Both the position numbers and the translations under genes were made by a program. Positions 29,640 through 56,758 of a DNA stretch of 64,000 nt are shown here, in pieces (position 1 is the first letter of the stretch; each line of letters opens with the position of its first letter). The stretch comes from Carpediemonas membranifera BICM (Eukaryota > Protista > Fornicata). Under the pieces are notes generated by a model that searched no databases, was not told the origin of the DNA, and saw only the letters and a list, made by a program, of their open reading frames with translations. The stretch spans positions 841,864 through 905,863 of the forward strand of contig JAHDYR010000067.1 in the NCBI GenBank assembly GCA_019828565.1, in the 5' to 3' direction.

Positions 29640-29875
29640 CCCTTTCACAGTCGGGGCCTCACGATGCTTGTCGGCATTGCTGCCGGTCTCCGCTTAGCTT
29701 CCTTCCTCGCCGCATGGCAGAACCATTACCTAACGAGCTTAGGTGGGAGCGACAGTGGTTGTTGCCCCTCCCAAGGCTGGAGTTACAGCCTGCCGGACAG
29801 GCAGGGCTCTTTTTACCTTTTGGTAACCCTGCCCCCCGGCCCCTGTGGGGCACAGGGGTTTGTTGAAAAAAAGAA
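29640..29875 (-). promoter_or_regulatory. Structured inter-ORF RNA element of LINE A
   Basis: U-rich tract, then hairpins cccctgtg/cacagggg, ggcagggt/gccctgcc, aggctg/cagcct, tgggag..ccactg..ctccca, then cctaag. The same order occurs at 37626-37830. Confidence 0.55.
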
Positions 29876-30034
29876 TGTGTTGCATTTTTGCTCCCGCCGG
29901 AATGGTTCGCCGGTGTCCATTTGGACTTTAAGGCCCTACTAGTCACAGCCTGGCCATACATGCTGGTTCATATATATACTTTTAGCTCAGACTTATATCA
30001 CACTACCCTCTGCACCTCTTACTTATGATTGTTT

Positions 30035-33000: not shown

Positions 33001-33890
33001 TCCATCCCGTACTTGGTCTGGATGCCGTTGCCTGAGATCGAAGAGTGTCCTGCAGCTTGCAGCGATGTTGCCACGAGCTCTAGGAGGAGCGTCCTTGCGA
33101 CCTTTCCCGTTCGGGCAGTGAAGTCCGTTGCGTCATCTCTGGTGAAGACCATGGCAACGTCCCTTGTGGGAATAGCCGCATCTGCTGAGGCTCTGATGCA
33201 GTCCCATTCGTCCGGTGTGGCCAGTTGCTTGCCCAGTGGCGTTAACGACTCCTTGATCCCATTTGGGGTGGTGTTTGCGCAATCCAAGGCGTCTGGGACG
33301 CTTTGGGAGCTGTTCGAGGTCATTGTGTGGCGTGGTCTCGAAAAGTCCCGGTTATGGATTCGGCCGAGATCAAGGCCCTCCTCCACGGGGAGAAGTGATG
33401 GGGTGTGTTGCTCACTAGCTGGTGCCGTCTGGCTCGTCCGGTGGGGATGTGCTACGTACTTGGAGTAGTCCGCCTGGACTCTGGGGTAGAACACAAATTT
33501 GGGGGACCCTGGGCGAAGCCGGCTTAGTGTCTCCGCCTGCTCTAGGTCCAGCCGGTTCCCTTCAATGAATAGCCAGTATGGCTGTTGGGCGGCTTTTGTG
33601 TACCGTCTCAGGAGGGGAAGTGATGCAAACAGCTTCTTGGCCCGGCTTTTCCGGAGCTCCCCTGGGCCTTCCTTTGCTGTAAAGCTTCCCTGTTCTGGGT
33701 CTACAATCTTGTCGTATCCTATCGCGTTGCCGAGCTGGATAATGGACGTATTTGCTTTTTTCCCTTCTGGTTTTCCTGAGATCCCTTCTGGGTGTAGCCT
33801 TAAGGGCGAATAAGCCATAAATCATGCTTTCTTCCCTATCTGGCATGTCCCTGTTGGGATATTCCCCTGTTTCCATTTGGAGTGGCAAAA
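30035..33890 (-). pseudogene. LINE A ORF1, frameshifted; contains a Maelstrom domain (about 31560-32300) and a C-terminal coiled coil
   Basis: Successive frames give IAMVDFE, IICEGAAL, HGCPPATFVD, HIVAKG and VCPYHKHAPHHCHCALAD, all homologous to 23962-25107. Coiled coil at 30035-30361. Confidence 0.7.
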
Positions 33891-36390: not shown

Positions 36391-37578
36391 ATGCGCTGGG
36401 AAGGCCGACGCATGGTCACCACAGTGATCCCGGAAGAGGCCAGAGTCAGAATGGGGGGCATCCCACCCAGCGGATACAAACCCGACGTGGACGGCAAGGA
36501 CGAGATGCCCTTCAGGGTCACGTACAGAGACACTCACCTCCAGACGGCAGTCGGCGAAGTCGAGCACCAAGTGGTAGGCAGGAACTTCAGAGACATCCTG
36601 GACCCTGCAACCCGGGTGGACAGACGCCGCGAGGACGAGCGCCGTGACCACAAAGAGATCAGGCGCCCGGACATCAGAGATGAGAGACACCACGACAGAG
36701 AGGTGGGTTACCAAGTTGACAGAGAGGCCAGACGGTCGGTCGACCAGGAGGTCAGGCGCCCTACTGGCAGAGAGATCGGACATCCCACCCACAGAGAAGC
36801 CATACACCTGGCCGACAGAGAGGCCAGACGTCCGGCTGACTATGAGGTCAGACGCCCCATCGCCAGAGAAGCTGACCAACCCACCGAAAGAGACATCAGA
36901 CACCCTGACGACAGAGAGGCTGGGCGCCTCATCGACAGAGAAATCAGACGTCCTGAAATCTATGAACGCGACACGGAGCTCGAACGTCTGGAAGCCAGGG
37001 CCAACAGAGCAGAACAGGGCGGTCTCCGGATCAGACCCGACTTCGAAGAGGCAGAGAGGCGCCAGCGGGAGAGAAACGAGTGGTTTAGAGAACATCTTGG
37101 AACAGCCAGAGACAACCGCAGAGGCAACCACTCCTCAGCAGCCGGCAAGCGAGGCAGCCAAGGCAGAGACGACCTATCCGAGTCAGGAAAGAGGAGCAGA
37201 CACAGTGACGACACCGCTGGGACGGTAAGAAGCAGACTACCGGACCAGCAGGACGCCGAGAAACAGAGGCTCCTACTTCAACTGGCAGAGGCACAGCGAG
37301 AAATCTCAGCCCTCAAGGCCGCCCGGCAGAGACCCGCAGACCTGGCAGGCACTGAACCCGACCCCCTTGTCAGACCACCGATTGAGATGGTCAAGAACAG
37401 AGACGCCGCGGTAGTGCCCCGTCGCAGGAACAAGAGCAGGAGAACCAGGACCACCAGACAGATGGACCCCATGGAGATGACACAGTTCATGTCCTTCATG
37501 GCCAACATGCAAGGTGGTCAGGCCCGCGACCCTGAACCGTATGATGATGCCAGTGAAAGTGAGGTCTCGGAGGAGTAA
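36391..37578 (+). CDS. LINE B ORF1-like protein with about 13 tandem 8-aa repeats and coiled coils
   Basis: Repeats REVGYQVD/REARRSVD/QEVRRPTG/REIGHPTH... at about 36650-36960. Lies upstream of the APE ORF. Confidence 0.6.
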   Translation: MRWEGRRMVTTVIPEEARVRMGGIPPSGYKPDVDGKDEMPFRVTYRDTHLQTAVGEVEHQVVGRNFRDILDPATRVDRRREDERRDHKEIRRPDIRDERHHDREVGYQVDREARRSVDQEVRRPTGREIGHPTHREAIHLADREARRPADYEVRRPIAREADQPTERDIRHPDDREAGRLIDREIRRPEIYERDTELERLEARANRAEQGGLRIRPDFEEAERRQRERNEWFREHLGTARDNRRGNHSSAAGKRGSQGRDDLSESGKRSRHSDDTAGTVRSRLPDQQDAEKQRLLLQLAEAQREISALKAARQRPADLAGTEPDPLVRPPIEMVKNRDAAVVPRRRNKSRRTRTTRQMDPMEMTQFMSFMANMQGGQARDPEPYDDASESEVSEE

Positions 37579-37625
37579 GTGGATCAGAGATAAAGCAGTA
37601 TTCTTTCAGAAACTAGTGTATCAGA

Positions 37626-37830
37626 CTTTCTTTCTTTATATATCCCTGGCTCCCACCCAGGGCCTGGCATTAGCCCACGGGCACTGCCAGTAGGTTGCAG
37701 GCGGCAGCCAAAGGGGGGGTCACGCCACTGCGCCCCCTCCTAAGTATCCATGCCCGAGGGCGAATCGGTCACCAAGAAGCACGGAGGCTGGCCCGCCAAG
37801 GGTTACCAAGACCGGCATCGAGGCCCCTTG
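37626..37830 (+). promoter_or_regulatory. Structured inter-ORF RNA element of LINE B (second copy at about 51885-52092)
   Basis: Hairpins ccctgg/ccaggg, ctggca/tgccag, ggttgc/gcagcc, gggg..ccactg..cccc, then cctaag. Differences between the two copies keep base pairing. Confidence 0.55.
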
Positions 37831-39648
37831 ACGGGACAGAGACACAGTGAACCCTTAGCCCCTGCAGAAATTCTCAGAATTCGCAGGATAAGGATCAGAG
37901 CATAGTACAACATGGAAACGTTCAAGATCTTAAGCCTGAACACTCAGGGGCACATAGGACGAGGAAAGGACTTCACGGCATCAATAGCAACAGCAATTCA
38001 AACCAAACTCAGAGACATTGAAGCGGTTTGTATACAAGAGACATGGAGAACAGCAAACACAAGAGTCCACAGCTTCATAGACTTCCAGTACGCTTTAGCA
38101 GGCAGAGAAACAGAGGAAACACTAGCAACAACGAACGAAAAGCGGAAAAGAGAGACCAGGTGCCAGCATCGCGTGAACAGACAACTGGGAATCACAGGTG
38201 ACGACCCCCTACACCCAAGTGGCACGGGACCAGAGAAGGCATCGGCACAATCGTAAGCCCGCATGCCAGAGCAACATGGGATGTCGGCATCACTGACAGC
38301 CTGTCAGGAAGAGTGCAGGCGAGTATTATGAGGACGAGCAGAGACATCATGGTAATCACAGTGTATGCACCCACTTCAGATAAAGGGAAGACAGTGAAAG
38401 ATCAGTTCAGAGACAACATCCAAGAGATACTGGACATGAAAGGGGACATGGAAGCAATCATCATTGGGGACTGGAACATGGCCCCAGGGCCGGCACACGG
38501 AACCACCAGGTGGAAGGACGTTATGGACAAACACAAACTCAGAGCAATCATACCAGAGAGGGGCACATTATCCAGTGGCAACACCACACCGGACTTCGCA
38601 ATGGTCTCAGAGGGAATCAGGAAAGCAGAGATTCAAGTGGTCAGCTCGACAGTGCTGGGAGTATGGGGGTCGGCCCACAAAGGGGTCAAGCTTGCCTGGG
38701 AAGAACCCCGATACAGAGCCAACAGAGACGATGACAGTGGCCTGGAAATGCCAGGAGTGCACACATGGAATATGAAAGAGAGGGAGGGCCACACAACAAT
38801 CAAGGAGCTAGACAGAAACGGATCGATAGATCAGTGGGAGGAGACAATCAGAGCCTGCCTGGGGGAACCAGCCGGGGAGAAGAGAGCCAAACCACGAGAG
38901 CAGATAGTACAAGACAGCGCATGGGCCGACCTCCATGAAACAGAATGGTCAGAAGCAGGCAACAAGGTGAGGACGAGACTAATGAACAGCGAACTGAAGA
39001 AGTGCTGGGACAAACGCAGAGAAGAGTGGATAGCCGACCTCAGCAAGAGCACAAGAGAGGGATACAAAGCATCGAGATCAATGGTAGAGGCTGCAGTCAG
39101 AAGATGGTGGTGCGACAACCAGTACAAAGGGATGCCTGGCAGCCTGCTCAAGGACGGAATGATCACCACGGACAAGGCCACGATCAGTGAAATCCTGCTT
39201 AAGCAGTATGCGAAGGTAAGTAGAGGCAGAGAACCAGAGTGGAAGGAGTGGCCTGGCATAGGAGGGGACGAATTCTCCAAGGAGGAAGTGAGAGCAGCCA
39301 TCAGTAAGATTAAGAGAGACACAGCCCCGGGCCCAGAGAACACAACAGGGACCATGCTAAGAGAACTCAATGAGCGAGGACTCAAGGAGCTTACCAGATT
39401 TATGAACAGGGTATATAGAGAAGGGAAGATCCCAGAGACGTGGAAATACGCAACAGTGTCAGCTATCCACAAGACCGGAAAACTCAGAGTTAAGCCAGAG
39501 TCGTATAGACCCATCTCGCTCACCCCGTTGCTGTACAGAGTATACGGTCGGCTGTTAAAGAAGAGACTGGAGAAGGCCACCAAAAGGTTCATACCCAGAG
39601 AACAGGCAGGATTCCAACCTGAAAGGGACGTAGTGCAGCAGATCCAGT

Positions 39649-42172
39649 GGAAGAAACGTGGAGGACGGCGAATACGAGGGTACACAACTTCATAGACTTC
39701 GACTACGCAATGGCAGGGAAGGAAACAGAGGAGGAGCTTGCTATGGACAACGAGAGGAGGAAGAAAGAAGCCCAAAGCCAGCGCCGAATAGATGCCCAGC
39801 TGGGCATAGCAGGGAGCAGTAGCCGGACGCCCAGGACGAGGGGTACTAGAGAAGGAGTGGGCACAATCATCAACCCAAGAGCAAGAGGGAGCTGGGACGT
39901 AGGCATCACAGATAGCTTATCAGGGAGGATACAGGTGAGCATACTCAGAACCCATAGGGACATCCTGGTGATCAACGTGTATGGCCCACCGGTCGGCCAC
40001 GGAAGGGAGGAGAAGGACGAGTTCAGGGACGGAATAAGGAGCATTCTGGAGATGAAAGGAGAGATGGAAACAATCATCATAGGGGACTGGAACCTCGACC
40101 CCAAAAGGATAGCCACAATGGCAAGATGGAAGGACCTGATCAGGGACTATAAGCTGGGAGCAGTGATCCCCATGGAAGGTACCCTCACCAAGGGAACTAC
40201 CACTCCGGACTTCGCGCTGGTATCATCAGGGATCAGAGGAGCAAGGATAGAAGTACTGGATGCTAGTCGACTCGGAGTCTGGGGGTCAGCCCACAACATG
40301 ATAAGACTGGAATGGAGGGAACAACGGATCCAAACGGACTACAAAGAGAGAGGAAGTCCTAGACATACCGGGCGTCAGAGTGTGGAACATGAGGAAGAAG
40401 GCTGAACGCACATCAGTCAGAAGACTGCACCGTTTTAAGAGCCTGGATGTGTGGGAGGAGGATATCAGGAAGGATATGGGCGAGCCGTCAGGTCACCCAG
40501 GCAGTGGATACAGGGAAGAGGTCATCAAAGAAAAGGTGTGGTCGGAGCTCCGGCACACACCATGGACAGAAGAGGGAAACAAGACCAGAAGTGAGATCAT
40601 GAAGTGTGAGCTACAGGCCTTCTGGGGAAAACGCAGGGAAGAGTGGATCCAGGACCTCAGCCGGAGCGCGAAGGAAGGATACAAAGCATCCAGGTCCATG
40701 GTGGAAGCAGCGGTAAGAAGATGGTGGTGTGAAAACCAGTTCAAGGGCATGCCAGAGAGCATACTGAAGGACGGGAAGATTACCACCAACAAGGAAGAAA
40801 TAGGTAAGATCCTCCTACAACAGTATGCAGGAGTGAGCAGGGGCAGGGAACCGGAGTGGAAGGATAGAGGCAATGGAAAGAGGGAGGACGAATTTAAGGA
40901 GAGAGAAATACGAGAAGCGATCAGAAGGATAAAGAGGGACACTGCACCGGGACCGGACCACACTACAGGGGACATGCTCAGGGACACAGATGACCAGGGG
41001 ATCGCTCAGATAACTAGGCTCATGAACAGGGTATACAGGGAGGGCAAGATCCCGACAACATGGAAGTATGCTACAGTCTCGGCCATCCACAAGACAGGGA
41101 AGCCCAGAGTGAAGCCGGAGTCGTACAGACCCATCTCGCTAACACCACTACTGTATAGGGTGTATGGTAGGCTCCTGAAGAGAAGATTAGAAGCAGCCAC
41201 ATGGCACCTCATCCCAAGAGAGCAAGCAGGGTTCCAATCGGATAAGGACGTAATACAACAGATACAATACATAGTGCAGAGACACCAGGAAGGGGGGGAC
41301 ACGACCTCAGTGTTCCTAGACATAGAGAAGGCATACGACACAGTGCCAAGAGACACCCTGATGGACAAACTCCAGGGAATGGGAGTGGAGGCCCACCTTA
41401 TCAGAGCAATCCAGAGCACACTACAAGAGACATGGATATCAGTGAAAGGGGCTAAGTCATGGGAAAGGACAAACAGGGGGGTGAAGCAAGGGTGCGTACT
41501 AGCCCCGACCCTGTTTGTTCTCTTCATGGCAAACTGGCCCCACCTGGTCAGGAAAAAGCACATGAGCGAGCCCTATGATATCAGAGAACCACCAGTGGAA
41601 ACAACAAGTACCAGAGACCCACTCCCGGCAGTGTTAACCATGTTTGTGGATGACACTGCAGTCACGGGAGACACACCGGTACAGAGCCAGATCATAGCAA
41701 ACCTGGTCATAGCGATCATCAGAGAACACGAAATGGGCGTCAACGAGCAGAAGAACGTCATGATCAGTGTCGACAGAGCAGCCACGGTCAGAATAGGCGG
41801 CGTCACGCTACTACCAGCGGAAGAGGCGAGGTACCTTGGACTATGGTTAGCCAGTGGCAGTGACCCCCTCAGAGCATGTATCGGGAAGAAGAAAGAACAG
41901 AGCAAGAGGTACCAGAACCTAGTGAGATGGGCGGGGTGGACTAGAGCAGACATGCCAGCGACAGCCAGCAGACTCCTCCTAGAAATCTACATTTGGCCGA
42001 GGATCACTTTTGGAATTGAAGTGTGGGGAAACGAGACAGGGGCCAGGAAGATCTGGAATGACTGGCAAGGTATCATGGCAGGCACTGGACCCGGAGGGGG
42101 CGCCGCCATGAGGCTGATGAACGGTTGGGTCGACCTCCAAGCCCACATGGAGATGCTTGCAGTGAAAACATA
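39649..42172 (+). mobile_element. Non-LTR retrotransposon C ORF2 (APE-RT), 5'-truncated and split by the TIR element; resumes at 51716
   Basis: ETWRTAN..INVYGP..IIGDWN; LDIEKAYDTV, GVKQGCVLAPTLF, MFVDD, RYLGL. Confidence 0.9.
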
Positions 42173-42242
42173 CTGTCAATTCCTTGACTTCAAGTCAAGT
42201 TTTTGTGACTTAAAGTCAAGGCCAAAACTTGACTTTAAGTCA
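42173..42242 (+). repeat. Left TIR (CTGTC tip and three TGACTTnAAGTCA palindromes)
   Basis: Read directly; reverse complement of 51646-51715. Confidence 0.95.
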
Positions 42243-43911
42243 AGACGTTTGAATTAATCAGAGGAACCAGGCTCTGTCAGTAAATAAGAATGGTATGGCT
42301 GGGTAGCAGTACTAGTTCTCTATTCACTGCATTGATGGCTAACTGTGGGCTAAGCTGTGACCTGAGTATGGGTGACTTCTTCTTGACGACGAGAGCCATT
42401 TTTTTCAAGTTCGACCACTTTGGCTCTGTCCCCTTCGCAGTTTTTTGCAGGATCTGATCTACACCAGTAGTGCTTGTGATCCAACAAAAATCTGCGAAGG
42501 GGACAGAACAGATCTCGAGATTTTTAGCAAAAGACTCGGGCCGAGTCGAGAGGCGTTATTGATGAGCGCACAGCTCAGGGAATTTTTCTACGCTGCAACT
42601 AAAAACCAAGAGGCCGAGTAAACACAAGTATTACTACACGATGATGCCCAGACCGTCGTGTAAGGAGAACATTCTTGGGCGGTCAACGCGAAGAAAAAGT
42701 TAAAGTTATTGGAATTAAAAAGACGGCAATGTACTCGCCCTTGGCTGAAACCTCAGGCATAATGGTTTCAGGTGTGAACTCTTCCAATTGGGGGAGTTAT
42801 TGTTATTGTTCAGTTTAAGGTCACGCCGCCTGCATGAAAAAAAAATGGTAATGACGGAAGCAATGTCGGATATATCCAGAAATGACTGTGATAGAGCTCA
42901 TAGCAAGACAGCATTCGAGATATTTGCCCATCTGAGCATGCTTTCGCTCATTCTAGATGGCATAAGCCTCTTTTCCCACAACTAATCAATATCAAGTCGG
43001 CTTTTACTCAGTATCGCTCGCTCAGACATCTGAAACGTCCCCATTGGCAATATAACACTGCTGGAACAGTGAAGTGGCGAGCATAGAGTTCTATTGATGA
43101 CGAAAGGTTGCGACCGGCAAGCGCCTGGTTCATACGGCCATTTGGGGCGGTGCGAGAGCCAATCTCGTTAATGAAAGGTAAGATGATGCGCGCATGAGTG
43201 TTTGTAGGGTCACTAACGACCTTAATGACGAGTTAGGACGTGTGTGGCAGGGCCGTGCGCTGCCGGAATACACAAAGGGCAGATTCGCCCCGTTGATTCC
43301 AGAAGCTCGCCGCTCTTCCACGCACGATAGTCAATACAGGGATAGATACACATCTGGACCTCTTTTATACAGCCAACCAGGCTCCGCATAAACTGCGCAT
43401 TTCAGATGACGCCCGATGAAGAAAAACACACGAGCGACGCCGGTATCGCCGGCGAAACGTATAGCATTAACGATTGAAGGGATAGAATTGGAGCTAGACG
43501 TTGTTTATGGGATTCAACGAGCGCACTTCATTGATTCTCGCATTGATGGTGAATTAGAGCAGATGAAGCGCTGCACGGCAAGGATCAAGACATTTTGTTC
43601 ATACTACATAGCAAATTACAACGAGTTTTCGATGTGAATAGATCTGTAAATAGAGAGAAACCTGTAGCAGCCGATAAACACTGTCAGTCAACAGCCCAAC
43701 CGAAGACACGCCAAAACACAAGCACAAGTCAGTTTTACTCAGTTTGATTCCCGCAATTGCAGAGTAGTTCTCATGGCAGTCTTTGCAGAGATTGCAGAGA
43801 TGATGGGGTGGGAGACACTCGATATTTGCATTTGTAGATGAGTTGGAGATAAATGTAGTCACTGACGCTAATCACCTTTTTGCAATGACACGGATGACGG
43901 AGTTCGTCATT

Positions 43912-44181
43912 CAATCTCGTTGCGAGCCATAAAGTGCACCAATAGTGGGAACCGACTTCCCACTATTTTCTCAGTGCCAATGAGCTATAGAGCTTTATTG
44001 AGGATATAAGCTTGCATAATAACACATCAATAGCGTCTGACGGCCGCTATGGCCCATGATACTCAATAACAACATCAAACGAGTCAAAGGAACCACGAAA
44101 CCACACAAGGAACGAGCTAGAAGAAACGATAGGAACTTTAATTGCATAAACAACATCAATACTGCCACCAGCTGTCCAGTC
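43912..44181. repeat. ~270-bp internal direct repeat (second copy at about 48655-48910) with an 11-bp-arm hairpin and the GCACTTTATG motif
   Basis: Near-identical blocks; aatagtgggaa-ccgac-ttcccactatt at 43941-43967 and 48673-48699. Confidence 0.85.
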
Positions 44182-44250
44182 AGCGCCCCAAAGCCAACAG
44201 CACCACGGCAGCACCACGACGCCACCGCAATTCATTCATTTACTACTGAC

Positions 44251-46010
44251 TCATTCCACAAAATAACAGTCATCCTCTGTGTTCTGTTGGGCAGACAGGT
44301 GCGATTCTGCCTTCCTCAGCTCAACAGGTGTTGCATGGTACACTTCCGCGTGTGCTGTGACGTCAGTTGGCGTGCCGGAGATATAAATGTAGTCATTGAC
44401 GCCAATCACGTTTGCAATGACACGGATGACGGACATGCTCGCATTAGTGTTTGTCAGGGTGATGTAACCCTTGTCTCTACCCTGGAAGAAGACGATTGTG
44501 CCGTCCTGGATGGATGCAATGGGCACGTTGTGAATCTGTGACCAGACCTGAATTGCGGTGTCCCGGCAGTATGGAAGACTGTCGTTCTTGCCACCCTTGC
44601 CTGTTGAACTGGCATGGCTGTAAAAGAGCTGATAGTCTGCCGGAAGTAGGTCGCGCTTCTGCATAATCCCTGCAGCAGCTTGAAGCTGCTTACGCCAATC
44701 TGTTGTCGGTACGTCACGCTCGTTAGACACATGCCTGAGGCAGTGGCCAACACAGTCACCATCGCCTGGGGGGTTGTACGGCTTGAACTTCGACCGGAGG
44801 TGACGTGTGAACTCGTCCAGGCAGTCCTCTCTCTCCTCGGTCTGGACATCCTTGTCATCTGTCGGGGTACGGTCGTCACCTTCGTTCATCTCAGTTCCAG
44901 TCTCGCAGGTCACAGGTCTGGCCTTCTCGGGCTCAGTCTGGATACAGGCGTCGCATTTGGTCACGTCCTCCTCATCTGACTCACCCTTCTTCTCAACAGT
45001 CACCTCCTCCTCTATCTCCTCCTCCTCTGACTCCTCCTCCGAGTCCTCTGGCCTGGCCTTCTCGGGCGTGATGATGAGGGCCTTGCGCTTCACAGACATG
45101 GAGGCCTCGGGCTCGTCCGTATCGCGTCGGGGACAGGAAGTCCTGGAGACTGTGCCAGACTGTGGCGGGATGGGGCTGCATGGGAGTGATGCATCTATGG
45201 ACTTGTCAGCGTCATAGGCTGCCTCTCGCTCAGCCTGCTGCTGCAGAAGGCGTCGATGCAGCGTGATGACTTCCTCACTCTTTGCCGTCAAGCTCTTCCT
45301 CAACTGCTTGACTCTCTTCTTGTATCCTCGAACAATTTTGTGATAGTAATCGATGATAGCGCCAGTACCTGGGGGGAGCAGGGGCGTACCTTCTCCCGCG
45401 GGGGTCTCCAACCATTCCAGGGCGATGATGTACTCTTCGAAGTACGAGCGGCAGGAGTGCTTCATGTAAGCAAGGTCTGCCTCCTTGCTGCGCACCCTGG
45501 CAACCATTGCTGTGACATGGTCGCGCACAAGCGCGTTGGTGGATGTCGCGTTGCGCCACGCCCGAACCTTGACACTCAGCGCCTCTTTTTCGATACGCGC
45601 GCCCTCATTCTCCTTGGCATACTCAGCCCTCTTGGAGTTCTTGAAGGCTGTGACAGCGGCCGACTCAAACGCCTTCATCTCCTTCTCCGTGAAGGTTGCC
45701 TCGATGATCTCGTTCGAGGTCTTATCCTGCACCTGCTGAGACAGCAATGCCTCGAGTTCTGCCTTCTTCTCGCCCTGAATCTCGAAATATGAGCACAGGT
45801 GGTTGAAGTTGATCCCTATATAAACATTTGCACCAATTACGTACCGTTCTTGACGACTATATCGAAGATATCGTTCTCGTCGAGCAATTTGTCCCGAAGA
45901 ACGGCACTCTTCGCCTTGTTTGTCTTCTTCTCCTTGAATTCGGTGATAACGGCCTCAATCACATCATCTGAGGTGCTCTCGATCCACTCGTGAAGGAATT
46001 CGAACGTCAT
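44251..46010 (-). CDS. Coiled-coil / acidic / OTU-like cysteine protease protein; spliced (intron 45816-45844)
   Basis: YNPPGDGDCVGHCLR..WRKQL matches the OTU Cys motif (DGxC), with a candidate His in the C-terminus (AHAEVYH). The 29-nt intron gtacgtaattggtgcaaatgtttatatag joins MTFEFLHEW..KNG to INFNHL..LLSQQ in frame. Confidence 0.7.
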
Positions 46011-47125
46011 TCTTCTCTTCGTTATATCCCAATAATGGACATATAACAGAGATGAGAAAATTGCCAGTAACCGTAGGCAACGGGGTGTCGGAAACGTTAT
46101 ACCATACAAACGGGGGATATAATCGCTCCGAAAACACCCATTATGTGGACTGAATGGCGATATAACGTATGGGGAGTGATCCGGCGAGCTTTCGGGCGGT
46201 GCAGGCTAAGACACACCAAGTCTGTGGTGCTATAACGTACCTCGGGACGCACTGTGGAGGCCCCTAGAGTACTCGGTCATGGCATGTCAGACCAAGGGTC
46301 CCTCAAATCTGGCCCCATTCAGGATGCACCCCCTAAATGTTCCGTTGCAAGCGTCTGACGGGCGTTCTCTGGATACCGACCAAGATGGAGGTCACGTGGA
46401 TCAACGGACGATAATTGCGGTATTCTGGCCATGCCTGGTACTCTCAAATCATCTATACTGCTCTGTGGTTCATTTATTGTTCATATCGTATGGTCCTGAT
46501 GGACTTATGATGATTGATGTTGTTTAGGGATTATTGTTGCTTTAGTGATGCTCTGCGCCCGCCAACTGATGTTTCTTAGTGTTGTGTACATGCCTACTAC
46601 GTTAAAGCCGCCAGTATTCTTTCTATTCTTAAGTTCGCCATTTCAATCTCGTTGCGAGCATAAAGTGCGCGAATGCGCGGGTCAGTTCCCCCGTTTTCAG
46701 CGAAGCTGATGCGACAACACAGAGGCAAGCGAATCCTTACACCTCAGGCGTTGCCAAGAGGCCGTTGTCTGCCAGGATCTATAAGCAGTGATGAGATATA
46801 CGGATTTCAGACTTTCTGCCTGCACGACCTCAAATGTTGACTCCCCTCGGCACCGAAAAGGCACCTATATCCATGAATACCCTCTACAGTGATGTATCCA
46901 CCCGATAAATGGATTTCAAATTTGTCGGGTCTCATGATAAATGGATTTCAGACTTTCGTACTGTTGGCCATCTGAGAATTTATGAACGACCTCTAGAATA
47001 TTTTGAAATGCAAGAACGTGCCTATGGCACTCTATTGTACCCCTGAACACGGTTTGACCACTGTTTTGGGCATTTGGAGAGATTCGAATTTTTGTGCATG
47101 ACGAAAGTCTGAAATCCGTATATCG

Positions 47126-48514
47126 ATGGAAGGAAGCCCGCAGGAGATGGAAACAACCATGGAAGCTATGAAAGAAGCTTGGTTGAACAAGATTAAGAAG
47201 AAATCTTCCCGGAAAGCGGTCGCAAACAACCTTTCGCGGTTCGTTCAATTCTTACAACGTGAGCGAGGGAGTACCGAGGATGAAGCGCTCTCCGTGATCC
47301 GATCCGAGGAGGTTAGATCGCTTGTGCCCGGTTTTGCTGCATCATTGAACAAGGCAACCGCTGCTGTCACTCTCAGTGCCGTCAACTCATTCCGAAACTC
47401 CGGCAGAGACAATGTCAAGCCGCTTGGGCAGTTTGAGCCTGTCGCATCGGAAGCTATTGTCCGACTAGTCTTCCCCTACAATGCGCTGGCTCTTATCATC
47501 AGCCACACGGGCATGACTGCCACATCAGCCCGCGATATTGATGTGAGCGAGCTCCAGATTCCCCCGGAACTCTCTGACTGGTTGCTATTCACCGGGGCAC
47601 CATCTGCGATGTCCGCTGTGATGCCTAGCACCTTCTCGCAGGCTCTCAAGTCGGTCGGGCTGAGTGTTAACCAGCTTCGCTATGCGCCCACTGTGCATGT
47701 CGATCTCAATCAGCTCAAGAAGCGGGTGATTGAGACACAAAGACGGACTGGCAGGCCCAGGGATCCGATCAAGGTTCGTAAGGTCATTAAGGACAAGCGC
47801 ATCAGCCTGACCGATGAGCAGTTCAGGCATCAGTTGGCGTCCAGTCACTTAACGACCACGCGGCGCCCAACGATCCTCGATCTCAACCCGGAGATCCGAA
47901 GCTCTGCTGACCTGGTGCCGCCGACGCTCGATGACTGGCTTTACAACAAGCTCAGGATTAGGATGGTCCAGCTCCACGACCAGCGTAAGCCCGAGGGGGG
48001 CGACACGGGGGAGGGTGAGTCTGACGATGAGGCGCTGTTTGACGAGACAGCTGGCGAGGCAGAGATGCCGGAGACCGCAGTGGAGGGCGAGTTTGACGAT
48101 GAGGCCGGGTTGGAGATGCTGGAAGGAGAGTGGGAGGATGAGGAGAGTTCAGACAGCGATGCCGAGGATAGCCTCGTCGACAACCTGTCATTTCTTCAGT
48201 CACAACAGGTTGAGTGTGATATGTCTGAGAGAGATACCGATGAGGGTGTCCGTAGCGGGGCCAATGGAAGTGGGCTCGCTCCGCTCTATGACTCTATGAA
48301 GACCAGGGAGCCCAGCAGACGCATTCGCCTTCGCCGCTATCACGAGAGCGAGTCAGACTTGGGCAGCAGCAGCGACAGCGAGGACGGGATGCCGAAGCTG
48401 CCCGTTGAGGCCTTTGAGCACATCCGTGATGCCGGGATGACAACTGTGAGGCTGACGAGGGCCGAGTATGACGACCTGATGGAGAAGAGAGAGCAGGAAA
48501 AGCATCAGAAGTAA
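47126..48514 (+). CDS. Degenerate tyrosine-recombinase-like protein with a Rad21/Rec8-like motif and acidic tail
   Basis: Core-binding-like SRFVQFL..KATAAVTLSAVNSF; box I-like LIISHTGMTATSARDIDVSEL; box II-like VGLSVNQLRYA; then RKVIKDKRISLTDEQFRHQL. Confidence 0.5.
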   Translation: MEGSPQEMETTMEAMKEAWLNKIKKKSSRKAVANNLSRFVQFLQRERGSTEDEALSVIRSEEVRSLVPGFAASLNKATAAVTLSAVNSFRNSGRDNVKPLGQFEPVASEAIVRLVFPYNALALIISHTGMTATSARDIDVSELQIPPELSDWLLFTGAPSAMSAVMPSTFSQALKSVGLSVNQLRYAPTVHVDLNQLKKRVIETQRRTGRPRDPIKVRKVIKDKRISLTDEQFRHQLASSHLTTTRRPTILDLNPEIRSSADLVPPTLDDWLYNKLRIRMVQLHDQRKPEGGDTGEGESDDEALFDETAGEAEMPETAVEGEFDDEAGLEMLEGEWEDEESSDSDAEDSLVDNLSFLQSQQVECDMSERDTDEGVRSGANGSGLAPLYDSMKTREPSRRIRLRRYHESESDLGSSSDSEDGMPKLPVEAFEHIRDAGMTTVRLTRAEYDDLMEKREQEKHQK

Positions 48515-48941
48515 ATGAACGAAGTAAATATGTCGTGGGAATGACTCAAACACTGACTAAGCCATCGACTTGGCGCAGCTGACCAGACAGTCAGATATAC
48601 ATTCATTTATTCCTGTCTCGCTCTCTTGCCTGTCGGAGACCAGCGGATTGAGATCGAGCCATAAAGTGCACCAATAGTGGGAACCGACTTCCCACTATTT
48701 TCTCAGTGCCAATGAGCTATAGAGCTTTAGTGAGGATATAAGCTTGCATAATAACACATCAATAGCGTCTGACGGCCGCTATGGCCCATGATACTCAACA
48801 ACAACATCAAACGAGTCAAAGGAACCACGAAACCACACAAGGAACGAGCTAGAAGAAACGATAGGAACTTTAATTGCATAAACAACATCAATACTGCCAC
48901 CAACTGTCCATTGGATTCCAGAAATAGCCATTGTCTCTTCT

Positions 48942-49181
48942 GGAACGTCCGGGAGAGAGCACGGGGGAGAGAGCACGGGAGAAGAGAGCCCGGGGGAACG
49001 TCCGGGAGAGAGCACGGGGGAGAGAGCACGGGAGAAGAGAGCCCGGGGGAACGTCCGGGAGAGAGCACGGGGGAGAGAGCCCGGGGGAACGTCCAAGAGA
49101 GAGCACGGGGGAGAGAGCCCGGGAGAAGAGAGCCCGGGGGAACGTCCGGGAGAGAGCACGGGGGAGAGCACGGGGGAGAGA
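48942..49181. repeat. Purine-rich minisatellite (~53-bp higher-order unit built from 13-14-bp GGGRGAGAGAGCMC subunits)
   Basis: Read directly. Confidence 0.9.
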
Positions 49182-49545
49182 GGATATTGGGGCCCCGAAA
49201 ACGCCAGCACCACCGCAAGTAAGCTATTTTATTGCAAAATACTCTACTTGCGCTGGTACTACAGCGTTTTCGCGGCCCTTTGCCCATCATTCGTCGTCTG
49301 ATTTTTTTTCGTGCAGAATTCAAACGAGTGCCGCCTGGCAGAGGCTGAGCATCTGAGCGTGGTCCCTGCGGTATCACTCGTCAGGCATAGCTCCCGGGCA
49401 TGCTCACGAAAATTCAGGTGCAGATTTGGGAGCAGAATGATCGACGAACCCCGAAAACGCCATAACCGGCACCAGTGAGCATATCTTCGTTGATGAAGCT
49501 CATTGGTGTTGGTATTATGGCGTTTTCGGGGTTCTAATACTGTAC

Positions 49546-50095
49546 TCCTCATCTCTGGCGCCCTCATCCTGGCGCCCTCATCCTGGCGCCTCATCCCTGG
49601 CGCCTCATCTCTGGCGCCCTCATCCTGGCGCCTCATCTCTGGCGCCCTCATCCTGGCGCCTCATCCTGGCGCCTCATCCCTGGCGCCTCATCTCTGGCGC
49701 CCTCATCCTGGCGCCTCATCTCTGGCGCCTCATCCTGGCGCCTCATCTCTGGCGCCCTCATCCTGGCGCCTCATCCTGGCGCCTCATCCCTGGCGCCTCA
49801 TCTCTGGCGCCCTCATCCTGGCGCCTCATCTCTGGCGCCCTCATCCTGGCGCCTCATCTCTGGCGCCTCATCTCTGGCGCCTCATCCCTGGCGCCTCATC
49901 TCTGGCGCCTCATCCTGGCGCCTCATCTCTGGCGCCTCATCTCTGGCGCCCTCATCCTGGCGCCTCATCTCTGGCGCCTCATCCTGGCGCCCTCGTCCTG
50001 GCGCCTCATCTCTGGCGCCTCATCTCTGGCGCCTCATCTCTGGCGCCCTCATCCTGGCGCCTCATCCCTGGCGCCTCATTCCTGGCGCCCTCATC
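49546..50095. repeat. Minisatellite of 13-16-bp CTCATC(Y/TC)TGGCGC(C) units
   Basis: Read directly; dozens of variant units, no unique spacers. Confidence 0.95.
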
Positions 50096-50369
50096 GCAGC
50101 GCCCACACAGCACCCCTACGCCAGCGCCACGACGCCACCCTCAGCGCCACGCCAGCCCCGCATCACCGGCGCCCTCAACAGCAAGTTCCATCATCCACAT
50201 CACTCCCTAACAACATCAACGACTCGCCTACCACCGACAGCGATGGCGAAGTCTGCGTTGATGTCGCCAGTGCCAACCCAGCTGGCATACGCGTCGCAAT
50301 GAATGTAAATGTTTACGTGTTCTCTTCGTCTCTTCTATCGTCCAGGATCTGCTTTCAGACGTCCATGAG

Positions 50370-50641
50370 CGATCATCCCTTATCCTGCGGAGCAGCCCAA
50401 CATCAGCTCAAGCGGTTCTGAGCATGCGTACAATGCTTCTGGGGCATGCAGAGTGATCATGTAGGAGCTTTATCACGATTCCAGGCTAGTTAGTGAGGGA
50501 ATTCGTCTGCAGTTCCCGGCAAATCTCATTATCTCCATTATTGCTGCAGTATTCAAAGTAAACGCGAACAACACGATCTATCTCCATTCATTGGCGCCTC
50601 GAGGAGCGCTTCAGTCCCTCTAGAGCGTGCTTCAGCAGCAT
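50370..50641 (-). pseudogene. Decayed paralogue of the 53981-54643 recombinase-like gene
   Basis: MLLKHALEGLKRSSRRQ*...VYFEYC..EICRELQTNS...MPQK..RMLRTA*..LRRIR, with stops and frameshifts. Confidence 0.7.
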
Positions 50642-51386
50642 TTCGATCGAGATTAAAAATCACCCGAATTCTAGCTCTGTTCTGTGGCCGCTGCAGGCAC
50701 CGCTGGGCGCGATAGAGCTCGGAGCGGCGTTGTCTGCCAAAAATACCTATTTGCTCCCGGTGAAAATTGAACCCACGATCAGGGGGCTGTGTACAAAGCC
50801 TCTTCCCTCTATGCCACGACTTATGGGAAATCCGCCCTTATTAATCTCCCTACAGGGAATATAGGCCATTTTGGAGGTATGAGCGACCGGGAGGGGGGGA
50901 ATGGGGGACATTTATGGTATGGCTGGACTCTACTCGGGCAGACTTTTATGATAAGGCTCAGATCAGACCTCTACGACAGCTATACGAGGAGAAACGAGCC
51001 AAGCAGCGCGCTAGCGGCCCATGGCCGCAGCAGCGCCCAGCAAAGCTCAGCTATAGGGTCACATGGGGCCCAAAATGACGTGCTCATCAGGTCGACTCCC
51101 ATCTATTGACTTGGTAATTGCAGAGGGCGTTTGAACGCGATGTCCTAATAACCGACATGGTCGGAGCGGTTCGGCGATGACTCCGTTGTATTCCACACCT
51201 TCTTCTGATGCCGAAACATGCAGTCCTTTAGAGTCAACGCGCGTCCTGTCCGTCAGGCATGAAGGGCATTCAGCAGAGGCATTGCTGCGGTCTGCAGGCT
51301 GCCCTAGCGCTTCAGGATGGCCAACTTCATGATCTGGACCCATGTCTATCAAATCCATTTTGATCACATCAAACGTGTGTCAAATC
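50604..51386. repeat. ~780-bp segment present inverted at about 53240-54018 (shared by the two TIR elements)
   Basis: Near-identical mirror ORF pairs: 50789-51109 with 53515-53835, and 51059-51367 with 53257-53565. Confidence 0.9.
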
Positions 51387-51645
51387 CGGCAAATCGATTT
51401 TGCGATAAAAAAAGGGGCAGAAGGGAGGAAGCGACCCATACGGCGTACTTATGGACCATTTCCTCCCACCTGCCCGTTTTTTGAGTCTCAACTCTCAATT
51501 CCAATTTGTCCCTATGTTACTTTTTTCTAGCAGGATTTAAAGTTTGATACTGCGCATGCGTATTGCTTAGGTATAGCCAAGTACTACCATACCACTTTGA
51601 AGATCCAGCTCCGGCTCATCGTCGAGTTCATTTTTTCTTGCAAAA

Positions 51646-51715
51646 TGACTTAAAGTCAAGTTTTGTCCTTGACTTTAAGTCACAAAAACTTGACTTGAAG
51701 TCAAGGAATTGACAG
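51646..51715 (-). repeat. Right TIR
   Basis: Ends GACAG followed by TA. Confidence 0.95.
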
Positions 51716-52875
51716 TATGGCCGCCGAGACACCTCAGTCAGTAGGCGGTACCTGGGGCAGTGGCATGACAGTAGCGACGAACGTGGAATGGCCATCGAGC
51801 AGATAGCTCTCTCAAGTCTCGCAGTAAACGCAAGACTGGAACAGGAGGGAGTAAAGTTACGTATTGCAGAGTTTCAGAGACAGTCTTTATTTTTCTTTTA
51901 ACAAGCCCTGGCTCCCACCCAGGGCCTGGCATTAGCCTACGGGCACTGCCAGTGGGCTGTGGCGGCAGCCAAAGGGGGGGTCACGCCACTGCGCCCCCTC
52001 CTAAGTATCCATGCCTGAGGGCGAATCGGTCACCAAGAAGCACGGAGGCTGGCCCGCCAAGGGTTACCAAGACCGGCATCGAGGCCCCTTGACGGGACAG
52101 TGACACAGTGAACCCTTAGCCCCTGCAGAAATTCTCAGAATTCGCAGGATAAGGATCAGAGCAGAGTACAACATGGAAACGTTCAAGATCTTAAGCCTGA
52201 ATACTCAGGGGCACATAGGACGAGGAAAGGACTTCACGGCATCAATAGCAACAGCAATACAAACCAAACTCAGAGACATTGAAGCAGTCTGCATGCAAGA
52301 GACATGGAGAACAGCAAACACAAGAGTCCACAACTTCATAGACTTCCAGTACGCTTTAGCAGGCAGAGAAACAGAGGAAACACTAGCAACAACGAACGAA
52401 AAGCGGAAAAGAGAGACCAGGAGCCAGCATCGCGTGAACAGACAACTGGGAGTCATAGGCGACGACCCCCAACACCTAAGTGGCAGGGAACCAGAGAACG
52501 CATCGGCACAATCGTCAGCCCACACGCCAGAGCAACATGGGACGTCAGCATCACTGACAGCCTATCGGGAAGAGTGCAGGCAAGCATTATGAGGACAAGC
52601 AGAGACATCATGGAAATCACAGTGTTCGCATCCACCTCAGATAAAGGGAAGGTAAGGGAAGAGATCCAGAGAAGGTGCCCCCTATGCTCAAGAGAGACTG
52701 AGATTGACATATTGTGGAAGATCCTCTTGGAGAAACCAGACCAGATCAGAGAACAGAGACTCATCAGAGACTGGGCAGAGGAACAGAGGATAGGGTCAGC
52801 ATCGCACATAATATGCGAATGCCCCATGGTAGACAGGGGGGACGGCTGGGCCAAGATCTGGAAAGAAGCGACATA
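51716..52875 (+). mobile_element. Continuation of LINE C (to about 51875) joined to an internally deleted LINE B copy (spacer, APE N-terminus, CCHC region)
   Basis: 51906-52650 duplicates 37644-38389, then jumps to RRCPLC..SHIICEC. Confidence 0.8.
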
Positions 52876-53980
52876 CTGTCTCCGGGGGGGGTGAGGTACC
52901 CACCTCGAATGGGTACCTTACCCATGGGTAAGGTACCCACCGTATCTCGAATCTTTTCTAGATACGGTCCCGAAAAACCACCAACCAAGGCCGCCAGTTT
53001 TTTTTCCTGCAAGAGCTCAAGTCCGGTCTATGACTGTTCTAGAGCTGCCCACGCGGTCCCCTACACTCACATAGCAACAGTAGAGTGAGTCCAGTGCAAT
53101 TACGTTGATACATGCGGAGATATAACAACCGGACAAAAAAATACAAACATGCTGCGTCATCGCTCTATGGTCTATGACAGGTCTACAAGCCGCTTCTGCC
53201 GCCCTGAAAACGTCCCTGACGCTTCATCGTCGAATCGTCAGATTTGACACATTGATGTGATCAAAATGGATTTGATAGACATGGGTCCAGATCCTGCAGT
53301 TGGCCATCCTGAAGCGCTAGGGCGGCCTGCAGACCGCAGCAATGCCTCTGCTGAATGCCCTTCATGCCTGACGGACAGGACGCGCGTTGACTCTAAAGGA
53401 CTGCATGTTTCGGCATTAAAAGAAGGTGTGGAATACAACGGAGTCATCGCCGAACCGCTCCGACCAAGTCGGTTATTAGGACATCGCGTTCAAACGCCCT
53501 CTGCAATTACCAAGTCAATAGATGGGAGTCGACCTGATGAGCACGTCATTTTGGGCCCCATGTGACCCTATAGCTGAGCTTGGCTGGGCGCTGCTGCGGC
53601 CATGGGCCGCTAGTGCCCTTACTGGCTCGTTTCTCCACGTATAGCTGTCGTAGAGGTCTGATCTGAGCCTTATCATAAAAGTCTGCCCGAGTAGAGTCCA
53701 GCCATACCATAAATGTCCCCCATTCCCCCCCTCCCGGTCGCTCATACCTCCAAAATGGCCTATATTCCCTGTAGGAAGCTTAATAAGGGCCGATTTCCCA
53801 TAAGTCGTGGCATAGAGGGAAGAGACTTTGTACACAGCCCCCTGATCGTGGGTTCAATTTTCACCGGGAGCAAATAGGTATTCTTGGCAGACAACGCCGC
53901 TCCGAGCTCTATCGCGCCCAGCGGTGCCTGCAGCGGCCAGAACAGAACTAGAATTCAGGTGATTTTTAATCTCGATCGAA

Positions 53981-54643
53981 ATGCTGCTGAAGCACGCTCT
54001 AGAGGAACTGAAGCGCTCTACGAAGGAGCAATACAAGCATACATATCAAAAACTGTGCGTTTACCTTGAGTGCGACGATGAGGATGCTGATGTTGTTATT
54101 TGCACAGAGATCCGACAAAATAGTGACGTATTCGAACAGTTTCTGGACTCTCTGTCCTTCTGTCGCCGTTTTGGACGGTACAAGTCTATCTCGATGCCTC
54201 AAAAGGCTCTCGTTCGCCTTCTTCGCACTGCTGGTGCCGAAACCGACCTAATTTGCAGGATAAGGACTCACACGCTTCCGGCACGCCAGGTGCTGACTAA
54301 CGAGGAGTACGACAAGCTCACGAGAGCTCTGAAGTACGACATTGCCGAGTCACACCGCCAGCTCGCCCTGGTCGTTGCTCTCTGCCGGCTGGGATCGTAT
54401 GTCGCAGACCTACGTGACTTGGACCTACCCGAGCTACAGGAGTTGATGCAAGAGGCTGCCGTGGATCACCCTGCCTTTGAGACCCTTATCCGGATGTCCA
54501 AGGTCCTTGATTCGCTCTGGGGTAGTCCCCCCATGACCGTCAGGCACGCGAACCGTATCCTGCACGAAGCGGGGATGCAGAGTCTGAAAAGACCCATCTC
54601 CCTGTCCGATCTGGATACCCCTGACGACAGATGGAATGACTGA
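53981..54643 (+). CDS. Catalytically degenerate tyrosine-recombinase-like protein
   Basis: LKRSTKEQY (N-terminal helix), LPARQVLTNEEYDKL, LALVVALCRLGSYVADLRDLDL (box I without Arg) and AGMQSLKRPISLSDL (box II without HxxR). No Tyr helix. Confidence 0.55.
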   Translation: MLLKHALEELKRSTKEQYKHTYQKLCVYLECDDEDADVVICTEIRQNSDVFEQFLDSLSFCRRFGRYKSISMPQKALVRLLRTAGAETDLICRIRTHTLPARQVLTNEEYDKLTRALKYDIAESHRQLALVVALCRLGSYVADLRDLDLPELQELMQEAAVDHPAFETLIRMSKVLDSLWGSPPMTVRHANRILHEAGMQSLKRPISLSDLDTPDDRWND

Positions 54644-54868: not shown

Positions 54869-55606
54869 TCACCACACACAACGCATGACCCTGCGAATAC
54901 GGTCGGTGGCTTTCTCCTTCAGCTTCTGTCGAAGCAGATCGCACATCGCGGTCTTGACGACGCGTCGAGATAATTCATCCGTGCGCAGGGTACTAACAGG
55001 CTCAACCAACAGCTCTGTCTGAGTAGACGCCTCCTCTAGGTCTCGCACAGTCTGAGTCTCTGCATGCTCACCCTGTGGCGAAAACTGCTGGCATTTTCCC
55101 ACCATCCTCGGCTTATCAGGATCAGGACCCAGCGCAGTCATGTAAACAGGCACCTCAACCCGCTTCTCGACTATCTTGACAGGCTGGGAGCCCCTGCGGG
55201 AAGGGGCTTGCGGGTGAACTCGCGTCCTGGTCGGCCCCCCGTTCGCCTCGTTGTGCAGAGCCTCCATGAAGGCATTGAAGCCGTCATCACGGCCCACCTT
55301 CTGTGTCACAAACGACATGACGCATGTGACCGACATCTCAAAGGATGCAAAATCGTCAGCACTGGAAACATCGCGATTGTGGCAGATTGAGTTTCGAGCT
55401 GCCAACAGCTCGCGTATATGTCTCTTATCAGCGTGGTGAAGATCAGGAACACGATGTAGGATCGCTTGCAAAAGCATAGCCGGATCCATCTCGCCACCGT
55501 CACCACGGTACCTCGCGATGTACTCCTGCAGCTTCGGAATCATCCTCAGTAGCGCTTCAAACATCATGCTGGCGTATCCTGCTGAATCCTTCGCCCCAGA
55601 GCTCAT
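54869..55606 (-). CDS. HEPN (Swt1-like) domain protein, tail variant 1
   Basis: MDPAMLLQAI..IRELLAARNSICHN contains the R-x4-H motif in a helical context. Confidence 0.65.
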   Translation of the reverse strand: MSSGAKDSAGYASMMFEALLRMIPKLQEYIARYRGDGGEMDPAMLLQAILHRVPDLHHADKRHIRELLAARNSICHNRDVSSADDFASFEMSVTCVMSFVTQKVGRDDGFNAFMEALHNEANGGPTRTRVHPQAPSRRGSQPVKIVEKRVEVPVYMTALGPDPDKPRMVGKCQQFSPQGEHAETQTVRDLEEASTQTELLVEPVSTLRTDELSRRVVKTAMCDLLRQKLKEKATDRIRRVMRCVW

Positions 55607-55925
55607 ATCGGTTTCTTCAGAACGAAATTCTAAAGAAATGTTCGCGGGTATGCCTGATCATCGCGCGTCGAAAGACAGCAGGAACGTACCCTACAGCTCA
55701 GGTTGAAGTAGGCTTGGCTTTGGTTCAACTGATAAATGCGCCATTGCTCCGTTTATATCATCCAATGTTAGGATGCCTTGCTATGATGATATACCGGTCA
55801 CTACGCTTCTGGGCGACGGTGGAGGCTGATGGTATGGCAGCGCAGGGGCATGAAGCGGGTCAGAGGGGTGGGTAGTCAAGGGATACTGACCGATCTTGGA
55901 ACTTGGATGATCGTTGTCGTGGCCA

Positions 55926-56093
55926 GATGAACTTGAGGCAGTGGTGGAGGAGGAACTCGCGGTCCGTGTGGGGCAGGGTCTCGCCGACGATGAAGGCCAT
56001 GGAAGAGGCGGCCTGGGTCATCGAAGGGACCTTGACGGGGTCAGCCCAGTTGTAGTAGAGGTGGGAGGCGTTGTACGCGAATGAGGCGACGTC
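55926..56093 (-). pseudogene. Captured PIWI/Argonaute C-terminal fragment, copy 1
   Basis: DVASFAYNASHLYYNWADPVKVPSMTQAASSMAFIVGETLPHTDREFLLHHCLKFI matches the PIWI-clade C-terminus (YKLCHLYYNWPGxIRVPAPCQYAHKLAFLVG..LFYL). Host-like GC3. Absent from the ORF track. Confidence 0.75.
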
Positions 56094-56610
56094 ACCACTC
56101 CCTACAACGGCGCCAGGATGTGGTCAAGGGGGAATTTGCACTGAGTCACGTCGAACTGGTTGCGGGCGACGTTGTTATCGTGACGGTGAAAGAGTGAGGG
56201 GATCGGTCTGCCCCCGCCGCTCTCTCCATGGCACTCTCCCCCGTGCGCCACCCCTGATCACTACGTCTGGACCACTATTCTTCCACGGCGTTCTCTCCCT
56301 GGCGTTCTCATAGGCAATCTTCTTCTTGCCTTCCTGATGTTGATATTAATTGTTTCTGTGTACACAAGCTTGCTAATGTCATTATAAGCTTCACGTAGTA
56401 CTAAATCGTCTTGTATTCCCGGTATTATCGTCCATATGGCTGAGCATGAATAATGATGTTGATTACAAAGGAGGGAGAAGCTGGTAGTGGCTCTAGAGCA
56501 GACAACGTTCAATGTGCAGCACGCATAGAACAACAATCCCCTGAATATTACTGTAACTGATCATTCCACGGATTTCGTTTGCGACAGCGATCGCAAAATT
56601 GTGCACTTTA
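56071..56610. repeat. ~540-bp module in three copies (56071-56610, 59936-60476, 62432-62971) ending in a hairpin and GTGCACTTTA
   Basis: Near-identical sequence; each copy is followed by a gene start. Confidence 0.9.
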
Positions 56611-56758
56611 TGGCACGTCGAGAGACGGCAGAAACATACCCTACAGCTCAGGTTGGCTCAACTGTTAATGTGCTCGTGGTCCGTGTGGGACACAGGGTCT
56701 TGCAGACCATAAAGTCCAGGGATGATGCGGGCTGTGGGTTCAGTTTTATTCATTCCGT

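Follow-up and report, generated by a model that had tools for sequence, protein, structure and literature searches.

Fragments of a host PIWI gene within a mobile multi-gene DNA element of Carpediemonas membranifera

The locus and the element that occupies it

The window, by which we mean the whole stretch of 64,000 nucleotides of contig JAHDYR010000067.1 (assembly GCA_019828565.1) that was analyzed, ends (by coordinate arithmetic, at 64000) where the contig itself ends. A TAF5-like gene lies at 10965–12782. LTR retrotransposons of the Gypsy type, nested and encoding a chromodomain integrase, occupy 16043–23861 and have a 99.6%-identical 4.9-kb copy on contig 12 (L011), and a cluster of LINEs (endonuclease, reverse transcriptase) in both orientations fills 25062–42168, with a 99%-identical 6.1-kb copy on contig 45 (L012). 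Beyond these lie two copies of a different kind of element, here called the sister element and the PIWI-bearing element, with the following features:

42169–51719, unstranded: sister element, 9.55 kb, with 74-bp terminal inverted repeats that start CATACTGTC and are 99% identical
52872–52960, plus strand: left end of the PIWI-bearing element, a CATACTGTC end followed by a 30-bp palindrome (52910–52939)
53981–54643, plus strand: ORF220, of a 7-member cluster, with the look of a recombinase core-binding domain by eye only
54869–55606, minus strand: HEPN-like gene, a weak Swt1-like HEPN match (E=0.003, below the Pfam cut-off), of an 11-member cluster
56070–56614, unstranded: spacer S, non-coding, 545 bp; also at 59935–60480 and 62431–62975
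56601–56613, minus strand: 13-bp core motif of the CCATAAAGTGCAC type; also at 58101–58113, 60467–60479, 62962–62974, 43927, 46658 and 48659
56759–58084, minus strand: PHD-like gene, a weak PHD-finger match (E=0.01)
58187–59239, minus strand: ORF350, an element ORF
59257–59925, plus strand: SET-domain gene (E=9e-5, above the Pfam cut-off)
61206–61967: chimeric copy of the HEPN-like gene
62997–63785, plus strand: ORF262, with a frameshifted copy at 60502–61291

Both belong to a dispersed family of large, mobile multi-gene DNA elements found only in the C. membranifera genome. Ends starting CATACTGT occur at 11 sites (42169, 51719 and 52872 in the window, plus eight on other contigs), no two of them with the same flank, and most are followed by short subterminal repeats. 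The left end of the PIWI-bearing element has a different flank on contig 41, and its other end lies beyond the end of the present contig. The sister element interrupts a LINE ORF2 (40380–42168, resuming at 51720), and with the element taken out the LINE reads through the empty site in a frame that is open for 60 codons, which indicates a precise insertion; at the flanks of this one insertion (42168/51720) there is no target-site duplication. A 794-bp inverted repeat (50604–51397 and 53230–54018) sets two element copies head to head and is a potential source of double-stranded RNA.

The enzyme that moves these elements is harder to name. Across some 30 element ORFs there is no Pfam transposase match, and no complete autonomous copy occurs among the sampled loci; with no transposase identified, the element is not filed under any known superfamily. 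A Helitron is disfavored in that the ends are inverted repeats and the sampled ORFs hold no helicase match. ORF462 (47126–48514) has about 20 relatives, with homologues in C. membranifera only and none found on viral contigs. It has no tyrosine recombinase match in Pfam, PHROG or PDB sequences, and a fold search places Xer structures near the top only at non-significant values (E=0.8–2) from poor models (pLDDT 41–46); by eye, both ORF462 and ORF220 resemble tyrosine recombinases that have degenerated. Related ORF pairs with no Pfam match at L010:1114–3663 and L005:373–2916, the former within another CATACTGT-ended element, are a candidate mobilizing enzyme. ORF498, a further element ORF at 44251–45747, has relatives (P0121, P0122) that UniRef labels as OTU-domain proteins, a label without Pfam confirmation.

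The 13-bp core marks the junction at which element copies exchange their left and right flanks, in loci L004–L008 as well as here, and is found 39 times in 109 kb of element DNA versus three times in 69 kb of host DNA. Spacer S terminates in it, and two element start codons are preceded, at a distance of about 20 nt, by its reverse complement. The core could serve either for recombination or as a promoter of element genes. Modules are arrayed head to tail at L008:9495–18049, L004:1–6200 and L007:1–4500, with the HEPN-like gene present seven times and the 3' end of ORF462 in units of 1.1 kb. The sister element, possibly of an undescribed DNA element class, contains two minisatellites of 14-bp units (48942–49182 and 49547–50095), and the unit of the second resembles DNA reading HPGAV just upstream of the PIWI piece A described below.

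PIWI1-derived pieces and their donor gene

C. membranifera has at least two PIWI-clade genes, PIWI1 (KAG9396300, P0060; 823 aa; contig JAHDYR010000006.1, locus L002:10001–12472) and its paralogue PIWI2 (KAG9390027, P0061; locus L003:10001–12434), neither of which has a Pfam PAZ match. PIWI1 is intact, lies amid ordinary host genes on contig 6, and matches Pfam Piwi at E=7e-38. Its top ten PDB matches are all PIWI-clade proteins, at 89 bits versus 67 for AGO2, and by this similarity ranking, which is not a tree, we take the donor to be a PIWI-clade protein nearer to PIWI than to the AGO clade. The role of the histidine in the D-E-D-H/D slicer tetrad is established. PIWI1 retains D574, E625 and D660, with Ser797 aligned to the His of sponge Piwi and of PIWI2, such that the tetrad is incomplete in PIWI1 and complete at its fourth position in PIWI2. 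This pattern suggests that PIWI2 could do the cutting, with PIWI1 as a non-slicing effector.

Comparison of PIWI1 DNA with the window and nine other element loci reveals seven distinct pieces of the gene (60–186 bp, 77–91% identity) in seven different flanking contexts. Those in the window are as follows, with positions in the PIWI1 coding sequence (CDS):

55828–55898, minus strand: piece D, CDS 1641–1713, 79%, with two 1-nt deletions, 27 nt past piece A and out of gene order
55925–56093, minus strand: piece A copy 1, CDS 2302–2470 of PIWI1 (KAG9396300), 90.5%, non-coding
56673–56734, minus strand: piece F, CDS 2380–2439, 77%, with a 2-nt insertion, 25 nt past the stop of the PHD-like gene
59935–59958, minus strand: 24-nt remnant of piece A, CDS 2302–2325, 10 nt past the stop of the SET-domain gene and antisense to it
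61331–61411, minus strand: piece E, CDS 1819–1900, 78%, 40 nt past the stop of ORF262, to which it is antisense
62189–62259, minus strand: second copy of piece D, from the PIWI1 DNA comparison
62286–62454, minus strand: piece A copy 2, identical in DNA to copy 1
63825–63900, minus strand: second copy of piece E, from the PIWI1 DNA comparison

Piece A comprises the last 56 codons of PIWI1 and the T of its stop codon, and both minus-strand stretches specify the same 56-residue peptide, containing HLYYNWADPVKVP. A sequence-only reading of this DNA had taken it for a captured PIWI C-terminal fragment inside a DNA element, and both parts of that claim are borne out. The peptide matches Pfam Piwi at E=6.7e-4 (profile positions 265–300 of 302), its top 11 PDB matches are all PIWI-clade proteins (best E=6.7e-6), and a search of 1.8 billion representative proteins returns two strong matches, both of them C. 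membranifera PIWI proteins. Set against the intact host genes, it corresponds to PIWI1 residues 768–823 with 91% amino-acid identity and to PIWI1 DNA at 153 of 169 nt (90.5%, E=1e-61), as opposed to 80% over only 115 nt, and 71% at the protein level, for PIWI2; KAG9396300 is the parent, and PIWI2 as donor was rejected, its match being weaker in every case. The edges of the match are sharp, at the Asp768 codon and at the first base of the stop codon. The carrier is recognized by ends with differing flanks, by multi-copy genes, and by the precise sister insertion. Piece A is, then, a fragment of a host PIWI gene within a mobile DNA element.

The same reading counted two copies. The second stretch is indeed identical, the two being contained in what the assembly shows as an internal duplication of 1401 bp (99.7%; 55214–56614 and 61575–62975) that sits at the contig end and whose module contig 41 has in another arrangement; the count is nonetheless too low, the 24-nt remnant, two copies each of D and E, and one of F being present in the window as well. 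Spacer S takes in the first 24 nt of piece A. The fragment is also retained elsewhere, two further copies of piece A being kept in another element copy on contig 41. A second motif, HPGAVVG, had been compared with the PPGTVVD of PIWI proteins. This part does not survive: because DNA identity to PIWI1 ends sharply at the Asp768 codon, HPGAVVG, which lies outside the match, is not PIWI-derived, the host protein reading NITLE there and an in-frame stop standing 11 codons upstream. The resemblance to PPGTVVD is due to chance.

Outside the window, piece B (CDS 1684–1869, 89.8%) is found on contigs 41 and 5, piece C (CDS 2129–2305, 88.8%) as an inverted pair on contig 61, and piece G (CDS 2217–2308, 79.6%) on contig 50, so that five of the ten sampled element loci, those beyond the window reached through protein look-ups, carry PIWI pieces (this window and contigs 41, 5, 61 and 50). 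No piece was found in 20 kb of each of contigs 69, 9, 15, 12 and 45. Piece B trails copies of ORF462 on contigs 5 and 41 that are related to the one in the sister element, which is without it. In two subfamilies of 90% identity, different pieces fill one and the same slot upstream of the HEPN-like gene: A and D in this window, C on contig 61.

All seven pieces derive from CDS nt 1641–2470, the PIWI domain in the last third of the coding sequence, and they tile 1641–1900 and 2129–2470; for the first 1630 nt, nhmmer at maximum sensitivity found nothing across the element loci. Piece A begins on the same 4 nt at which piece C ends, and C and G have a 1-nt deletion in common, so a single long capture, later broken up, is possible; were that so, the argument for specificity would be weaker. 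An intact PIWI1 among ordinary genes, together with sharp-ended pieces of 77–91% identity, argues for capture by the element as opposed to insertion of the element into the gene. An exon of an unannotated third PIWI gene was rejected, the pieces being frameshifted and disordered and the first 1640 nt missing from all loci. A processed pseudogene was likewise rejected: there is no 3' UTR or poly(A), and piece A stops inside the stop codon.

A dominant-negative peptide had been suggested for piece A. Measured against PIWI1 as it now stands, pieces A, B and C have a pS of 0.25 and a pN of 0.05. Where pieces overlap, their common differences from the host are 7 silent to 2 replacement, and those private to a piece are 8 silent to 29 replacement, near the 24% silent share expected without selection (Fisher P=0.003 for the two ratios). 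It follows that the pieces decay as non-coding DNA and that most of what separates the host from the captured version is silent, an excess on the host side that was measured without a close outgroup. The pS>pN of A, B and C does not reflect selection on a peptide. Consistent with this, a stop stands 11 codons upstream of piece A, whose conserved motif is preceded by no ATG and which has lost the stop where the host has one; frameshifts are present in C, D, E, F and G, the last four of which are decaying through indels, and B is without the first catalytic Asp.

Pieces A, B and C have changed by about 5% since the split, as against about 13–20% at host silent sites. Such slow change would fit selection for a match, an accelerated silent change in the host, or the capture of another strain's allele; no closer PIWI donor was found on metagenome contigs. 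The silent drift of the host from the captured version may represent escape. Two results do not bear this out: codon optimality in the captured region of PIWI1 is no lower than elsewhere in the gene (P=0.56), and the silent host-versus-piece differences have no direction (18:13).

How particular is this capture to PIWI? When 28 control host genes, 44 kb in all, were compared with 110 kb of element DNA, nothing convincing emerged; the best match (E=0.009) fell within an element ORF, and PIWI1 reaches E=6e-42 in the same DNA. A PIWI-blind scan for host-like codon usage, applied outside element ORFs, returned only pieces A, B, C and G and one further segment (L006:14140–14244), which has 35 codons of strongly host-like usage, matches nothing in Pfam or the PDB, and is possibly a piece of another captured host gene. 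With so small a share of the genome's genes as controls, and with a scan that misses decayed pieces, specificity for PIWI is likely, not proven.

A putative anti-silencing role and its alternatives

We lean modestly toward a reading in which the pieces serve putative anti-silencing by small-RNA cross-targeting of PIWI1 mRNA, convergent with the telomeric retrotransposons of Drosophila. The family would have taken up the PIWI-domain third of PIWI1, in one or several events, and the captured sequence would now persist as short non-coding pieces between the element's own genes. If the element is transcribed and, as repeats usually are, processed into Argonaute-bound small RNAs, some of these should be complementary to PIWI1 mRNA. 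Pieces B and E and the remnant of A lie antisense, 10–235 nt past plus-strand element genes, and this placement, together with the inverted pair of piece C, makes antisense RNA plausible. The guides might also match PIWI1 well enough for repression: 100 of 149 possible 21-mers from A, 99 of 166 from B and 71 of 157 from C have at most two mismatches to PIWI1 (45–67%), as opposed to 9, 14 and 15, respectively, to PIWI2 (6–10%). As the PIWI1 level fell, silencing of the element would relax, a negative feedback to the element's benefit. Because PIWI1 is without the fourth slicer residue (Ser797 for His) that PIWI2 keeps, the simplest wiring would have slicer-competent PIWI2, itself largely spared, cut the mRNA of non-slicing PIWI1. 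The cross-targeting idea gains strength from the Drosophila precedent and from the six PIWI1 pieces found in addition to A. It has to contend with the half of the sampled loci that are free of pieces, with the sister element in this very window, which is without piece B, with a possible origin in one capture, with the decay of D, E, F and G, and with controls that make up a very small part of the genome. A more elaborate version strikes us as doubtful when taken whole. It posits an undescribed modular class of elements with CATACTG ends and no target-site duplication, which swap modules at the 13-bp core, carry SET, PHD and HEPN-like cargo and swappable anti-PIWI guide templates, and renew the latter by repeated capture as the host escapes silently, the PIWI2 slicer removing non-slicing PIWI1.

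One rival, which we consider rather unlikely, makes the pieces neutral passengers: about 830 nt of PIWI1, captured once by accident, would have been scattered by module shuffling and tandem duplication and would have no effect on PIWI1. The tiling of a single segment, the 4-nt overlap at which A and C abut, and the deletion common to C and G are what it would predict, as are private changes neutral at the protein level, a highly rearranged element, and piece-free copies at five of ten loci. It does not readily explain why the only captured host gene identified should be the element's own silencer, nor the persistence of pieces in seven separate contexts, and the slow change of A, B and C relative to host silent sites is unexpected for a vertically inherited passenger. 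Regulation of an Argonaute gene by small RNA is known from miR168 and AGO1 in plants, and such autoregulation gives some footing to a host-serving feedback, in which repeat loci act as small-RNA sources and the pieces set the PIWI1 level by silencing activity. Its molecular step is identical to that of anti-silencing, with a different beneficiary, and the same sequence evidence applies to it; the pieces, however, reside in a dispersed mobile family with young insertions and not at one fixed locus, and PIWI1 has drifted from them instead of staying matched, which leaves host feedback improbable in our estimation.

We give the same low standing to a shield, or hostage, arrangement of the kind proposed for captured fragments in maize (10.1101/777037), whereby the host must moderate its silencing of sequence common to an essential gene and PIWI1 is not actively repressed. 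The pieces do adjoin the ends of element genes and likely promoters, as a shield might, but the choice of PIWI over any other essential gene is left unexplained. As for a translated dominant-negative C-terminal peptide, piece A is itself free of internal stops and frameshifts, and its pN is below its pS relative to the present host gene. The silent excess responsible for this lies on the host side, and the private 8:29 is as expected without protein-level selection; given also the upstream stop, the missing ATG, the lost host stop codon, the frameshifts of the sibling pieces and the absence of the first catalytic Asp from piece B, we regard such a peptide as extremely improbable. A microRNA hairpin was considered and rejected, the fold being unexceptional (z=0.36, no special hairpin) with no Rfam match over the pieces.

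Comparison with known systems

The nearest parallel to the anti-silencing reading comes from fruit flies. Telomeric transposable elements of Drosophila are reported to have made at least nine captures, eight of them of piRNA-pathway genes (nxf2, piwi, aub) (PMC13534243). The pieces, of 140–235 bp and 76–95% identity, come with antisense piRNAs, and the host region that was captured evolves faster (PMC13534243; for TART-A and nxf2, PMC7785250). As in these Jockey-clade LINEs of Drosophila and Zaprionus, short pieces of a PIWI-clade gene are held in a transposon in C. membranifera (here 60–186 bp at 77–91%), several regions of one gene are represented and amplified within the element, and the host gene is diverging from the captured sequence. 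The likeness is one of DNA anatomy. The carrier here, on the other hand, is a DNA element that has several genes and terminal inverted repeats, not a telomeric retrotransposon, and the host is a metamonad protist without a described piRNA pathway. The donor PIWI1, moreover, is without the slicer His, and host divergence is almost all silent. Capture of PIWI genes in transposons is thus known from fruit-fly telomeric elements, and the Carpediemonas case differs from it in carrier and in host lineage. PIWI, Argonaute and transposons go unmentioned in the main text of the C. membranifera genome paper and in those of its supplements that were searched (PMC8516963), and a literature search that took in few subscription journals found no description of PIWI capture in Carpediemonas.

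Among DNA transposons, the miR820 of rice CACTA elements targets OsDRM2 (PMC3459959), and here, too, a DNA transposon contains sequence complementary to a host silencing gene. There, a hairpin microRNA acts at one site; here, the complementary sequence consists of captured coding pieces of Argonaute itself, without special hairpin structure. Pack-MULE and Pack-TYPE elements and Helitrons likewise carry host coding fragments out of gene order, but they draw on many unrelated genes, whereas PIWI1 alone is identified here, in an element with its own SET, PHD and HEPN-like genes, no target-site duplication and no recognized transposase. Relative to DDE cut-and-paste elements of the CACTA or MULE Pack type, the terminal inverted repeats are present and the target-site duplication is absent. 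Cryptons and their relatives are DNA elements mobilized by a tyrosine recombinase and make no target-site duplication. The present element resembles them in that respect, in the possibly recombinase-like ORF462, and in its recurring 13-bp junction core, and departs from them in having terminal inverted repeats and a recombinase similarity that is not significant.

If the anti-silencing reading is correct, capture of PIWI-pathway genes would be a general outcome of small-RNA defense, reached independently of telomeric elements and of animal piRNA biogenesis in a distantly related, anaerobic, free-living protist. Under the more elaborate modular-element version, a metamonad would be host to an arms race over Argonaute mRNA that arose independently of the Drosophila cases. 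For Carpediemonas itself, an active PIWI-type defense against transposons would be implied, and a division of labor between slicer and non-slicer PIWI proteins would be indicated.
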